Shown here: piece after piece, positions 23,710 to 26,472 of the stretch
Layout: each line of letters starts with the position of its first letter
How positions within the stretch are numbered: position 1 is the first letter of the stretch
Sequence record: MT995927.1
Strand: one strand, 5' to 3'
DNA: 64,000 nucleotides
The notes under the pieces: model-generated
Told to the model about the DNA's origin: nothing
Seen by the model: only the letters and a program-made list of their open reading frames with translations
Database searches by the model: none
Translations under genes and position numbers: made by a program

Positions 23710-23853
23710 ATGCAAGTACGAATTGAGGTAATCAATAGTGAGGGCGATCTGGATATCGAAGAACGGATTGATATCCGCCCAATGAAAGGGTTAACGGCCT
23801 GGATGGTCGTTCTAGCTATCAAAGGTCTTGTAACTAGCTTTGCACGTAAGTAA
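23710..23853 (+). CDS. 47-aa protein MQVRIEVINSEGDLDIEERIDIRPMKGLTAWMVVLAIKGLVTSFARK
   Basis: SD TAAGGAG; hydrophobic C-terminal helix; not in the ORF track. Confidence 0.7.
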   Translation: MQVRIEVINSEGDLDIEERIDIRPMKGLTAWMVVLAIKGLVTSFARK

Positions 23854-23858
23854 GGCGA

Positions 23859-23905
23859 CATAAACCCCTCTCCACATGGAGAGGGGCCTGTCTTTATTTT
23901 TTTTT
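23859..23905. terminator. Bidirectional terminator
   Basis: CCCCTCTCCA-CA-TGGAGAGGGG between convergent genes, with a T tract. Confidence 0.75.
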
Positions 23906-24401
23906 ATTTAGTTAATGGCTTGTTTAATTCATTTAACTGGTTATTGTTATTAACAGCTTCATTATGGGTAATATTTCTACATAATTCAATTATGTATTCT
24001 ACCTCAGAATAAGCTAATTCAAAGAATTCAGTTAATGACATATTAGATAAGCTACCTACTTTATACTTGAAGAAATCTCTAGTCAGTCTCCTTCTCAACC
24101 CACCTTCGATAAAATCCTCTTTAGGATTCACCTTATTTAACCACATGGGTCCGTTTTCTGGTGAACCGATATCATAATCAAGTAGATATGCTTCTCTTGT
24201 TAAACGTGCTGCTGTAGACGGTCTTACTGCCCCTACTGTCGATAATAGTCTATCTAAGTGTGTATCATCTTCAGTTAACTTATCATAACCAAAGTTTGGA
24301 TGTAGGATGTGGCCACTATCTTCCTTGAAAGTGGCCTCAAGACGACTATATCTCAGATCATTAACTACACCATCCGGTTTGACTTCGAGGCCGCCAAAGT
24401 A
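23904..24401 (-). CDS. -1-frame extension (165 aa) of the gp77-like gene; T4 gp51 / tail chaperone GT-like C-terminal part
   Basis: Frame is open 24419 to 23904 with no ATG/GTG/TTG for 91 codons above 24146; entered by a -1 slip at the A7 run. Confidence 0.65.
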   Translation of the reverse strand, partial: YFGGLEVKPDGVVNDLRYSRLEATFKEDSGHILHPNFGYDKLTEDDTHLDRLLSTVGAVRPSTAARLTREAYLLDYDIGSPENGPMWLNKVNPKEDFIEGGLRRRLTRDFFKYKVGSLSNMSLTEFFELAYSEVEYIIELCRNITHNEAVNNNNQLNELNKPLTK

Positions 24402-25966
24402 AAAAAAGTTGACAGCATGTCAATAGGGATTAGGTGTGGGAAACGTTCTTTAAATTTAGTAGCGGCAGGTGACTCACATACTGGGCAATTCCAACTTGTA
24501 ATTGCAATCATACCAATTAGTTGTGAATCAATGAAGTTACTTACCGCATTAATAAAGCGATCATTATATTCCGGTGTGGATAGAATATTAGTTAAGAACT
24601 TTTCAATAGTTTCACGGTTAGTAGTTGCAGTGCGGATATTATCCTCAGAACTTTCACCATCATCATCTTCACGTACTTTAATCTCTTTAACAAAATGTGA
24701 GAACTGACGGGCAATAGAGATCTTTTGTAAACGTGCAATATACTGAGAACGTTGCGGTCCATCAACTGGTTCATTAAAACTACCTTGAGTCATATCGATA
24801 ATTGAGTTAATCCAACTATCACCAGACTCTCGGCGGTCAGCAATTGTGCACATCTCAAGAACAACACCAACGTCACCAAACATTTCAGTTACTTGAGTTT
24901 CAATACGGAATCCTTCTTTATAAGTCTTAAGATCAGATTCAGTACATGCATTAAACTTACGTGCAATATATTTCTTTTGTTCTTCTGAGAATGCCAGTAG
25001 ATCATATTGAACAAGCGTTGACATATTAAGTTTCGCTGTTTCAATATGGTTACATGTATTGGCATCTGCAATACATGGATAACTATAATTAAATCCATCT
25101 GGATACATAGTCGCTGCTAGTGCATGATGTAAGAATGGTTCATCAGCTACTGAGATAACATGCTCTAGGTCAGTTGGAGTGTTGAACTTATAGTTGGATT
25201 GAATAACACATGCAAGTGCTAAACTACTAACCATGTTAAGTAACACAGCTGCCATGTTTGAGAACAGCATACCTTTTGATTCAGCACCTAGTCGGATCTT
25301 TAATTGTGCTAGACGTGCTTGTAGGGCAGCTACTTCAGTACCAGTAGGTGCACGTAGTTTTACCCAAATACCTGAATGAGGTAGGAAAGTATCATATGGC
25401 GTACCGATGTTAGCTTTACGTGTTAGGAAAACTAGAGTTTCATCATCGGTCATTTTACGACCATTGGTATTAAATACAGGTCGGCCTGGGCGAATGATCT
25501 TTTCACCATAAGGAATTTCACTAGACCATTCAGAACCTTCTCGGGCAGTTGCACCGATTGGTGCATCTTCAACAATAGAGTGAGCTAAGCCTTCCAGAAT
25601 AGCAGCTGTCCACTTTACACCGTCACTAGTGTCATCTATTTTATTATCAGCAAATGCTTTAAATAGTTCTTTATTGTGATCCAGGAAATTATAAACAGTC
25701 TGGGGGTTCTCACGTAGCAAAGTAAGAATGCTAGCACTGTCTTTAATAGCCGGTTCAGAAGCATCCCGAATATTTCCAGTTTTAGCATTACGTGGAATAC
25801 GTAGTTTAATTTCTTTTTGATCAGAAACGAAAGGTGGAGTTTCCACCTCGTCATTATTTTCAATACTAGAGTCAGGATCGTGTTGCGCATTGATCTCATC
25901 AATTTGATCTAGTAAATTCTCTTCTGGAGTATCATCGTACTCATTATCGAAGTCAGCAGTAGCCAT
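24365..25966 (-). CDS. Putative tail/baseplate assembly chaperone, T4 gp26-like (gp77-like), 533 aa
   Basis: C-terminal CPVC followed by ...STFF, like the CxxC...dFF end of T4 gp26 family proteins; family call is inference. Confidence 0.6.
   Translation of the reverse strand: MATADFDNEYDDTPEENLLDQIDEINAQHDPDSSIENNDEVETPPFVSDQKEIKLRIPRNAKTGNIRDASEPAIKDSASILTLLRENPQTVYNFLDHNKELFKAFADNKIDDTSDGVKWTAAILEGLAHSIVEDAPIGATAREGSEWSSEIPYGEKIIRPGRPVFNTNGRKMTDDETLVFLTRKANIGTPYDTFLPHSGIWVKLRAPTGTEVAALQARLAQLKIRLGAESKGMLFSNMAAVLLNMVSSLALACVIQSNYKFNTPTDLEHVISVADEPFLHHALAATMYPDGFNYSYPCIADANTCNHIETAKLNMSTLVQYDLLAFSEEQKKYIARKFNACTESDLKTYKEGFRIETQVTEMFGDVGVVLEMCTIADRRESGDSWINSIIDMTQGSFNEPVDGPQRSQYIARLQKISIARQFSHFVKEIKVREDDDGESSEDNIRTATTNRETIEKFLTNILSTPEYNDRFINAVSNFIDSQLIGMIAITSWNCPVCESPAATKFKERFPHLIPIDMLSTFFTLAASKSNRMV
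24401..24407 (-). promoter_or_regulatory. Putative -1 ribosomal frameshift slippery site U_UUU_UUU
   Basis: XXXYYYZ heptamer in the correct phase (codons F521-F522); 8-bp stem begins 8 nt downstream. Confidence 0.65.
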
Positions 25967-25977
25967 TTAAAACTCCA

Positions 25978-26472
25978 TTATTGTTGAATTAGTTTTTCGT
26001 CCCAACCAGCTTCTCGAAGAGTGCCGATCATCGCTAGGATTACACCATCAATACCGCGTTCAATAGCACCTTCAATACCAGTGTATTTAGTAACGAGTTC
26101 ACTGATGAGTTTTAGTTCATCTTCATTATTTGCTGGACCAGCCTTACCTTGATGTTGTGCATATAGGACACTGATAATTTTAGTTAGTCGATTAAGGTCA
26201 GCAATAACTGTTTGTAGGTTCTTTTGGAATCCAGTAGGATCAGATAACGTCGGAATGATTTCATTGATCTTATTGATAACTGGATTAATGAATACTTCAG
26301 TTTGTAGAATACGCTTACCTATAGAACCTGCTAGTACATTGACAACATCCCAACCATCACGGTTAAGAATATGATCAGCTGCCGCAGCTGATGCTCCAAC
26401 AGCACGTTCAAATAGACGTAGAGTCTTTTCCTGTTCTTTAGTTAGAGTTGGTTCTTTAGCTTTATTTGACAT
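25978..26472 (-). CDS. Conserved hypothetical protein, 164 aa
   Basis: SD GGAG; co-oriented with the gp77-like gene. Confidence 0.8.
   Translation of the reverse strand: MSNKAKEPTLTKEQEKTLRLFERAVGASAAAADHILNRDGWDVVNVLAGSIGKRILQTEVFINPVINKINEIIPTLSDPTGFQKNLQTVIADLNRLTKIISVLYAQHQGKAGPANNEDELKLISELVTKYTGIEGAIERGIDGVILAMIGTLREAGWDEKLIQQ

Follow-up and report, generated by a model that had tools for sequence, protein, structure and literature searches.

Two described phage systems are close to the gene reported here, which lies in a stretch of 64,000 nucleotides (nt) from sequence record MT995927.1, hereafter the window. In phage lambda, a low-level -1 frameshift in G/GT sets the ratio of products needed for assembly, according to a review of recoding (PMC5009743, summarising Levin 1993; Xu, Hendrix and Duda 2004). 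In phage T4, gp26 and gp51 are listed among the hub assembly chaperones, and what they do in the hub is a matter of long-standing dispute (PMC3004832). Both T4 proteins match the Pfam family PF12322 (T4_baseplate) in full, with 216 and 178 bits, and are thus paralogues, gp51 being longer by a C-terminal tail; in the T4 record, genes 26 and 51 are divergent neighbours. The gene in the window corresponds to gp77 of phage phiKZ. Together with a start-less frame behind it, gp77 is in our reading very probably one recoded gene, which would give a short and a long form by a programmed -1 ribosomal slip and would be a counterpart of the T4 hub chaperones.

The window belongs to a phiKZ-type Pseudomonas phage. 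Over 2.2 kb around the site it is 100 % identical to phages T2P, U1B and U5, and a total of 47 records match at 95-100 %. The phiKZ counterparts of the two open reading frames (ORFs) concerned are PHIKZ077 (gp77), with 533 amino acids (aa), and PHIKZ076.4 (gp76.4), an ORF of 80 aa behind it that starts with ATG. gp77, Goslar gp081 and RAY gp267 are listed under the chimallivirus core gene cg18, as 'hypothetical' (PMC10299810 supplement).

The 0-frame ORF of gp77 is located on the minus strand (24365..25966, stop codon at 24365-24367). Close to its end, the minus-strand codons ACT TTT TTT ACT place a heptamer T_TTT_TTT (24401..24407) in X_XXY_YYZ phase over Phe521-Phe522, and the 0-frame stop follows after 11 further sense codons. 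Starting from an upstream TGA (24422-24420), the -1 frame runs for 91 codons without ATG, GTG or TTG, and its first start codon is the ATG at 24146. Both frames are open only between this TGA and the 0-frame stop, within 24368..24419 on the minus strand, and a shift must therefore fall there. Behind the slip site, the -1-frame coding sequence comprises 165 codons and a stop codon at 23904-23906 (23904..24401, minus strand). Its first 85 codons contain no ATG, GTG or TTG, and the annotated gp76.4 (23904..24146, minus strand) is only its tail. From these coordinates, products of 533 aa and of 522+165 = 687 aa are predicted. A first-pass annotation of this DNA had proposed just this layout. Its coordinates were right throughout, from the 533-aa ORF and the in-phase U_UUU_UUU at 24401-24407 to the open, start-less -1 frame reaching 23904, and our analysis agrees both with its product sizes and with its view of the 80-aa ORF as the mere tail of a longer frame that has its first ATG at 24146.

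According to the mechanism we propose, most ribosomes would follow the 0 frame to its stop and release the 533-aa protein. A minority would move back by one base, with two Phe-tRNAs on T_TTT_TTT (24401-24407), and would continue through 165 further codons of the -1 frame, resulting in a 687-aa protein that has its first 522 residues in common with the short form. The gp77 gene would then be the chimallivirus counterpart of the T4 hub chaperones, with the short product in the place of gp26 and the long one, carrying an extra C-terminal domain, in that of gp51. The slip would determine in what proportion the two forms are made, like the G/GT frameshift of lambda in tail assembly. That the slip is ribosomal, that its efficiency is low and that its products serve hub assembly is what we infer from the comparisons that follow.

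Runs of seven T's or A's are common in this DNA. Both strands of the window contain 19 of them, several in intergenic regions, and even this number is a depletion relative to the 34.6 ± 7.8 expected from dinucleotide shuffles. The evidence hence lies in the conservation of the run and not in its presence. By tblastn with gp77, 226 phage records were found, each with a single matching place, and their hosts include Pseudomonas, Erwinia, Salmonella, Serratia, Ralstonia, Klebsiella, Vibrio, Aeromonas, Burkholderia, Escherichia and Bacillus. We compared the junction in 37 distinct loci, consisting of 10 annotated genomes and 27 further IMG/VR loci, with annotated hosts from the genera Pseudomonas, Escherichia, Ralstonia, Erwinia, Salmonella, Klebsiella and Bacillus. 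The two-frame anatomy is present at a conserved Phe-Phe pair (TTT TTN) in all 37 loci. The 0-frame stop is found 8-21 codons past the site, the -1 frame extends for a very constant 151-179 codons, and the +1 frame is short and inconstant in length (5-123 codons). The heptamers are T_TTT_TTT (17 loci), T_TTT_TTC (8), G_TTT_TTT (7), G_TTT_TTC (3), A_TTT_TTC (1) and T_TTT_TTA (1). The canonical X_XXY_YYZ heptamer is thus given in 26 of the 37 loci, and the first position is G or A in the other 11. The first-pass annotation had suggested looking at orthologues for the heptamer and for an open -1 frame lacking a start, and both are kept in every one of the 37 loci.

Codon usage points to selection on the site itself. 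TTT is used as the first codon of the Phe pair in 37/37 loci, compared with a mean TTT share of 0.377 at the other Phe codons of the same genes, and the product of the TTT shares over 23 lineages with less than 50 % mutual identity amounts to 1e-13. These genes contain 13 other Phe-Phe pairs, five with TTC-TTC, eight with TTC-TTT and none that begins with TTT, which indicates that the slippery pair is avoided elsewhere and fixed at the site. Bacillus phage AgentSmith has Leu at the second position and nevertheless carries a classic slippery sequence, T_TTT_TTA, an indication that the nucleotides, and not so much the residues, are under selection.

The heptamers also bear on the question at which step the frame is changed. 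If the phage RNA polymerase added an extra U within the T run in a fraction of the transcripts, normal translation of these would yield the same long protein, indistinguishable from the product of a ribosomal slip. Such transcriptional slippage would fit the runs of T7 or T8 in many lineages as well as the fact that phiKZ-type phages use their own atypical polymerases, the subunit genes of which flank the locus. We nevertheless regard it as unlikely, because the run is as short as five T's in four chimallivirus lineages (G_TTT_TTC, A_TTT_TTC), counts six after a G in seven more (G_TTT_TTT) and consists of six T's followed by C in 49/49 of the cyanophage-type loci described below. T5 and T6 runs are short for slippage by multisubunit polymerases. 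Furthermore, the first codon is always TTT and the second TTT, TTC or TTA, which is the re-pairing rule for tRNAs in tandem slippage and not a rule of run length.

The properties of the -1 frame can be set against a further explanation, namely that there are two separate genes, the downstream one being started on its own from a non-canonical start or by re-initiation after the gp77 stop. Some annotations are in line with this idea: a TTG or GTG is found near the 0-frame stop in some relatives, such as 201phi2-1 gp135, which is annotated from a TTG overlapping the TGA, and PHROG 12109 models the downstream piece as a protein of its own with 147 aa. However, the position of the first ATG, GTG or TTG in the -1 frame is not conserved and lies anywhere from codon 8 to codon 136 (85 in phiKZ, 87 in AgentSmith, 136 in locus L030 of our set). 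A tblastn search with only the -1 piece yielded the 47 close relatives together with more distant phages of Pseudomonas, 21 in number and 34-40 % identical. The majority of these matches start at residues 1-6 of the piece and hence upstream of the 0-frame stop, so that protein similarity begins inside the overlap of the two frames. In many lineages, conserved motifs of the aligned -1 frames are already found ahead of the first start codon. For close pairs, the start-less stretch behind the 0-frame stop contains 86/45/200 substitutions at positions 1/2/3 of the -1-frame codons, to be read as a pattern and not as a p-value, as the pairs overlap phylogenetically. The -1 frame is thus coding upstream of any start codon. 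Independent initiation would also leave unexplained the invariant TTT at the site and the avoidance of TTT-first Phe-Phe pairs elsewhere, and taken as a whole the explanation by two genes appears quite improbable to us. The frameshift put forward in the first-pass annotation is backed by the conserved heptamer, the start-less frame, and the motifs and third-position excess ahead of the start codons.

In a profile search against 1.84 billion representatives, the family comprised 1700 cluster representatives. A fused single ORF was absent from the best 150 of these 1700, and each of the proteins ends within about 27 residues of the end of the profile. Word-indexed protein searches with the -1 piece returned 1 and 5 proteins only. 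Homopolymer runs are typical error sites, but that a single ORF was broken in two by an error of sequencing or by a recent frameshift mutation is hardly credible, given that both frames are kept in all 47 independently assembled phiKZ-like genome records and in every distant relative examined, with differing run lengths, and that 0/150 of the best representatives are fused.

We also analyzed the RNA downstream of the site, where the first-pass annotation had seen an 8-bp stem in competition with a second hairpin. The arms of the stem (24385-24392 and 24333-24340, together 24333..24392 on the minus strand) and those of the hairpin (24336-24330 : 24317-24311) do exist in the sequence, but the stimulatory role assigned to them found no support. 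The stem is part of neither the minimum-free-energy nor the centroid fold of the 96 nt after the site, it is not conserved, and we do not count it as functional. Structure in the 96 nt themselves is unremarkable (z = -0.91), with equally good folds in 34 of 200 shuffles. When the 50-nt segment downstream of the site was ranked against segments of the same gene, the median rank over the 37 loci was 0.37 (Kolmogorov-Smirnov p = 0.18), and a rank below 0.1, corresponding to a strong local hairpin, was observed in 7/37. A hairpin may exist in some lineages, and none is general. On account of the fold z values, the rank test and the absence of the stem from the folds, a conserved downstream hairpin or pseudoknot appears unlikely. 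A downstream stimulatory structure is not obligatory for low-level shifts.

To place gp77 in a protein family, we combined profile, fold and motif comparisons. No named function emerged when the two pieces were scanned against Pfam and PHROG, and a sequence-profile search against the PDB gave nothing meaningful. Among Pfam families, PF12322 is matched by the largest number of relatives, which amounts to 3/70, below threshold, with a best E-value of 0.0011. An AlphaFold model of gp77 based on 95 sequences reached a predicted local distance difference test score (pLDDT) of 87.8 and a predicted template-modelling score (pTM) of 0.88. Foldseek with this model against the PDB resulted in no match below E 0.36; we know of no solved structure of gp26 or gp51. 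Against BFVD, the matches that follow after the gp77 family itself are predicted structures of proteins of about 250 aa, some under the name 'baseplate hub assembly protein, bacteriophage T4-like' and others under 'baseplate hub subunit' (E 8e-5 to 7e-4, target template-modelling scores 0.51-0.56). The model of the -1 piece, made from an alignment of 6 sequences, had a pLDDT of 38 and was unusable.

Profile comparisons by hhalign aligned the gp77 family with the gp26/gp51 homologues over 114 collinear columns including the cysteine motifs (probability 35 %, E 3.9e-4). The last 47 columns of the -1-frame profile could be placed on the 65-column profile of the gp51 tail, covering 47 of its columns (probability 53 %, E 1.3e-4). 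Both profile matches were obtained with small alignments on the T4 side and are to be taken as suggestive only. The -1-frame segment involved, residues 107-153 of 165 towards the C terminus (23943..24083, minus strand), aligns at this level with the extension that is specific for gp51. The homologues of gp26 and gp51 have two cysteine pairs, and the gp26 type ends with CPxCG...Gly-Leu-x-x-Phe-Phe. In the gp77 family, C298, C305, C494, C497, F521 and F522 are nearly invariant; Cys494 and Cys497 form the motif CPVC (24476..24487, minus strand), which together with Cys298 and Cys305 makes up the four cysteines, and a C-terminal CPxC is also found in the gp26 family. Fold, profile and motif signals agree, all of them below formal thresholds, and support gp77, remotely, as a putative relative of T4 gp26/gp51. 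In 201phi2-1, gp136 and gp135 carry no mass-spectrometry virion note and the neighbouring gp138 has one, which is only an indirect hint that the two may be absent from the virion.

The resemblance to gp26 and gp51 had already been suspected in the first-pass annotation, and it is borne out at this remote level by the BFVD folds, the sub-threshold PF12322 matches, the profile E-values of 3.9e-4 and 1.3e-4 and the shared CPxC...Phe-Phe. The accompanying picture of a gp26 joined to a gp51 does not hold as a parallel to T4. A tandem gp26-gp51 layout is ruled out there, as the two genes are divergent paralogues, and the parallel is therefore one of a short and a long paralogue and not of two joined genes.

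Compared with the known systems, gp77 combines features of several. Like T4 gp26/gp51, it would provide two products with a common body, the longer of which has an extra C-terminal domain, and it has two cysteine pairs, a C-terminal CPxC...Phe-Phe, a matching fold and a profile that appears collinear. In contrast to gp77, T4 uses two divergently transcribed paralogous genes without a slip site. The sizes differ as well (533 aa for gp77 versus 208 and 249 aa for gp26 and gp51; 165 aa for the -1 extension versus about 48-65 aa), and gp77, which stays below the Pfam threshold, adjoins genes for a helicase, an RNA polymerase subunit and a head protein instead of baseplate genes. With gpG/gpGT of lambda it shares, as far as the anatomy goes, a -1 shift placed close to the 3' end of the gene for a (here putative) assembly chaperone, which would yield a minor, C-terminally extended form in a fixed ratio to the short one. 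Unlike gpG/gpGT, gp77 belongs to a different family and size class, with matches to tail assembly chaperones at E above 1, it is not situated between tube and tape-measure genes, and its slip occurs on a U run over Phe-Phe instead of G_GGA_AAG. Lambda G/GT is therefore a functional analogy for gp77 and not a case of family membership. In phage P2, E and E+E' come from a -1 frameshift on T_TTT_TTG in the tail chaperone gene of this myovirus; P2 would share with gp77 the U-run heptamer and the contractile tail, and the gene family is different. As in dnaX of E. coli, which encodes tau and gamma, one gene would give two products by a -1 slip on a homopolymeric heptamer. The shifted product of dnaX is, unlike that of gp77, the shorter one, and its site is A_AAA_AAG. 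The dnaX site is flanked by strong stimulators, whereas no conserved stimulator was found at the gp77 site.

Several points weigh against a recoded gp77 and against its tie to the T4 hub chaperones. The compared loci share kinship, and their counts are not independent events. A G or A in the first position of 11/37 heptamers would make re-pairing in the P site imperfect. Shifting on U_UUU_UUU and U_UUU_UUA is much weaker in E. coli than on A_AAA_AAG, as reported in the recoding review (PMC5009743), and no conserved downstream stimulator was found in the 37 loci (mean fold z = -0.54). The weak shifting on U runs in E. coli and the lack of an evident stimulator together suggest that the shift is probably inefficient. 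Regarding the protein, gp77 of the window has no Pfam hit at E up to 1, the family profiles gave no significant hhalign match to single T4 gp26 or gp51 sequences, and the homology to PF12322 is below formal thresholds, with hhalign probabilities of 35 % and 53 %.

The same kind of site was also observed outside the Chimalliviridae. A single PF12322 gene was seen in three T4-related phages, namely Agrobacterium phage OLIVR5, Synechococcus phage S-WAM1 and Cronobacter phage LPCS28. In all three, the terminal Phe-Phe is encoded as T_TTT_TTC, the stop follows 1-2 codons later, and the -1 frame is open for 65-75 codons, its alignment with the gp51-specific tail beginning right at the junction. The places concerned are L051:1967-2160 for OLIVR5, L052:1964-2166 for S-WAM1 and L053:1967-2145 for LPCS28 in our locus set, and loci of the cyanophage type are within L054-L133. 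GenBank contains such tails as tiny separate ORFs or leaves them unannotated; the small downstream ORF of OLIVR5 is annotated as 'baseplate hub assembly catalyst'. Among the IMG/VR loci of the cyanophage type, which were gathered with a single cyanophage protein as query, T_TTT_TTC is found in 49/49 distinct loci, each time with the stop one codon behind it and with 65-67 codons of -1 frame that contain the tail motif.

In T4 gp26, the terminal Phe-Phe is encoded by the non-slippery TTC TTT. A slip site is missing in T4 and in three relatives that possess gene 51 as a gene of its own: the codons at this place are TTC TTT, or Phe-Phe is absent, and the -1 frame there is gene 25. Full-length gp51 homologues are common in phages of enterobacteria, Acinetobacter and Aeromonas. 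Synechococcus is outside the ten commonest host names listed for the gp51 search and accounts for 37 records in the gp26 search. Whether the -1 slip on Phe-Phe is an old shared feature of the whole PF12322 superfamily in phages with contractile tails, from cyanomyoviruses to Chimalliviridae, with T4 genes 26 and 51 as a later resolution of one recoded gene, is in our estimate an evenly balanced question. If it is, hub assembly would depend on a fixed ratio of short to long chaperone, like that of lambda G:GT, and many small ORFs named 'gp51' or 'hypothetical' behind gp26-like genes would be mis-annotated trans-frame tails. The T4 record (L047:10803-12229) in addition annotates an internal product 26' (L047:10803-11090).

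On one side, gp77 is flanked by the helicase gene gp75 and an RNA polymerase subunit gene, and on the other by gp78, the head protein gene gp79 and gp80. gp78 (25978-26472, minus strand, 164 aa, PHROG 14050) is located directly upstream of gp77 in the inspected chimalliviruses, including Goslar, RAY, RSF1 and SPN3US, and is a possible partner for the proteins encoded by gp77. The genes gp76.4 and gp76.3 converge on a GC-rich, terminator-like hairpin of 9 pairs with T-rich tails on both strands (23865..23886), which lies shortly behind the -1-frame stop and looks like a bidirectional terminator. The plus-strand ORF of 47 aa behind it (23710-23853, PHIKZ076.3) is named 'baseplate hub protein' in phage Churi (Churi_gp258), an odd label for a tiny ORF that runs opposite to gp77, and one perhaps transferred from the adjoining gp77 locus. 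A plus-strand ORF of 132 aa that overlaps the locus (24309-24707) is without support. Finally, a 'hypothetical protein, partial [Klebsiella pneumoniae]' of 96 aa from a contig of 288 bases shares 90 % identity with that part of the phiKZ -1 frame which lacks a start codon, and is probably phage sequence within a bacterial assembly.

We found no description of a gp77 frameshift in the open-access full-text literature, and an earlier mention elsewhere is possible; the first-pass annotation, too, knew of none for phiKZ-like jumbo phages. The name 'gp77' refers to genes of other phages in the literature found, the word 'baseplate' was not found in the accessible portion of the recoding review (PMC5009743), and none of the inspected GenBank records contains a joined coding sequence over both frames. 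With the reading proposed here, core gene cg18 would gain a so far unannotated, predicted product of 687 aa and a candidate role in baseplate hub assembly. For annotation, this would concern a family of about 1700 cluster representatives, the downstream half of which is nearly absent from protein databases. It would also link T4 gp26/gp51 to the logic of frameshift-coupled assembly chaperones. The site itself is kept across very distant phages with hosts of very different GC content, and may thus be useful for studying U-run slippage without an obvious stimulator.

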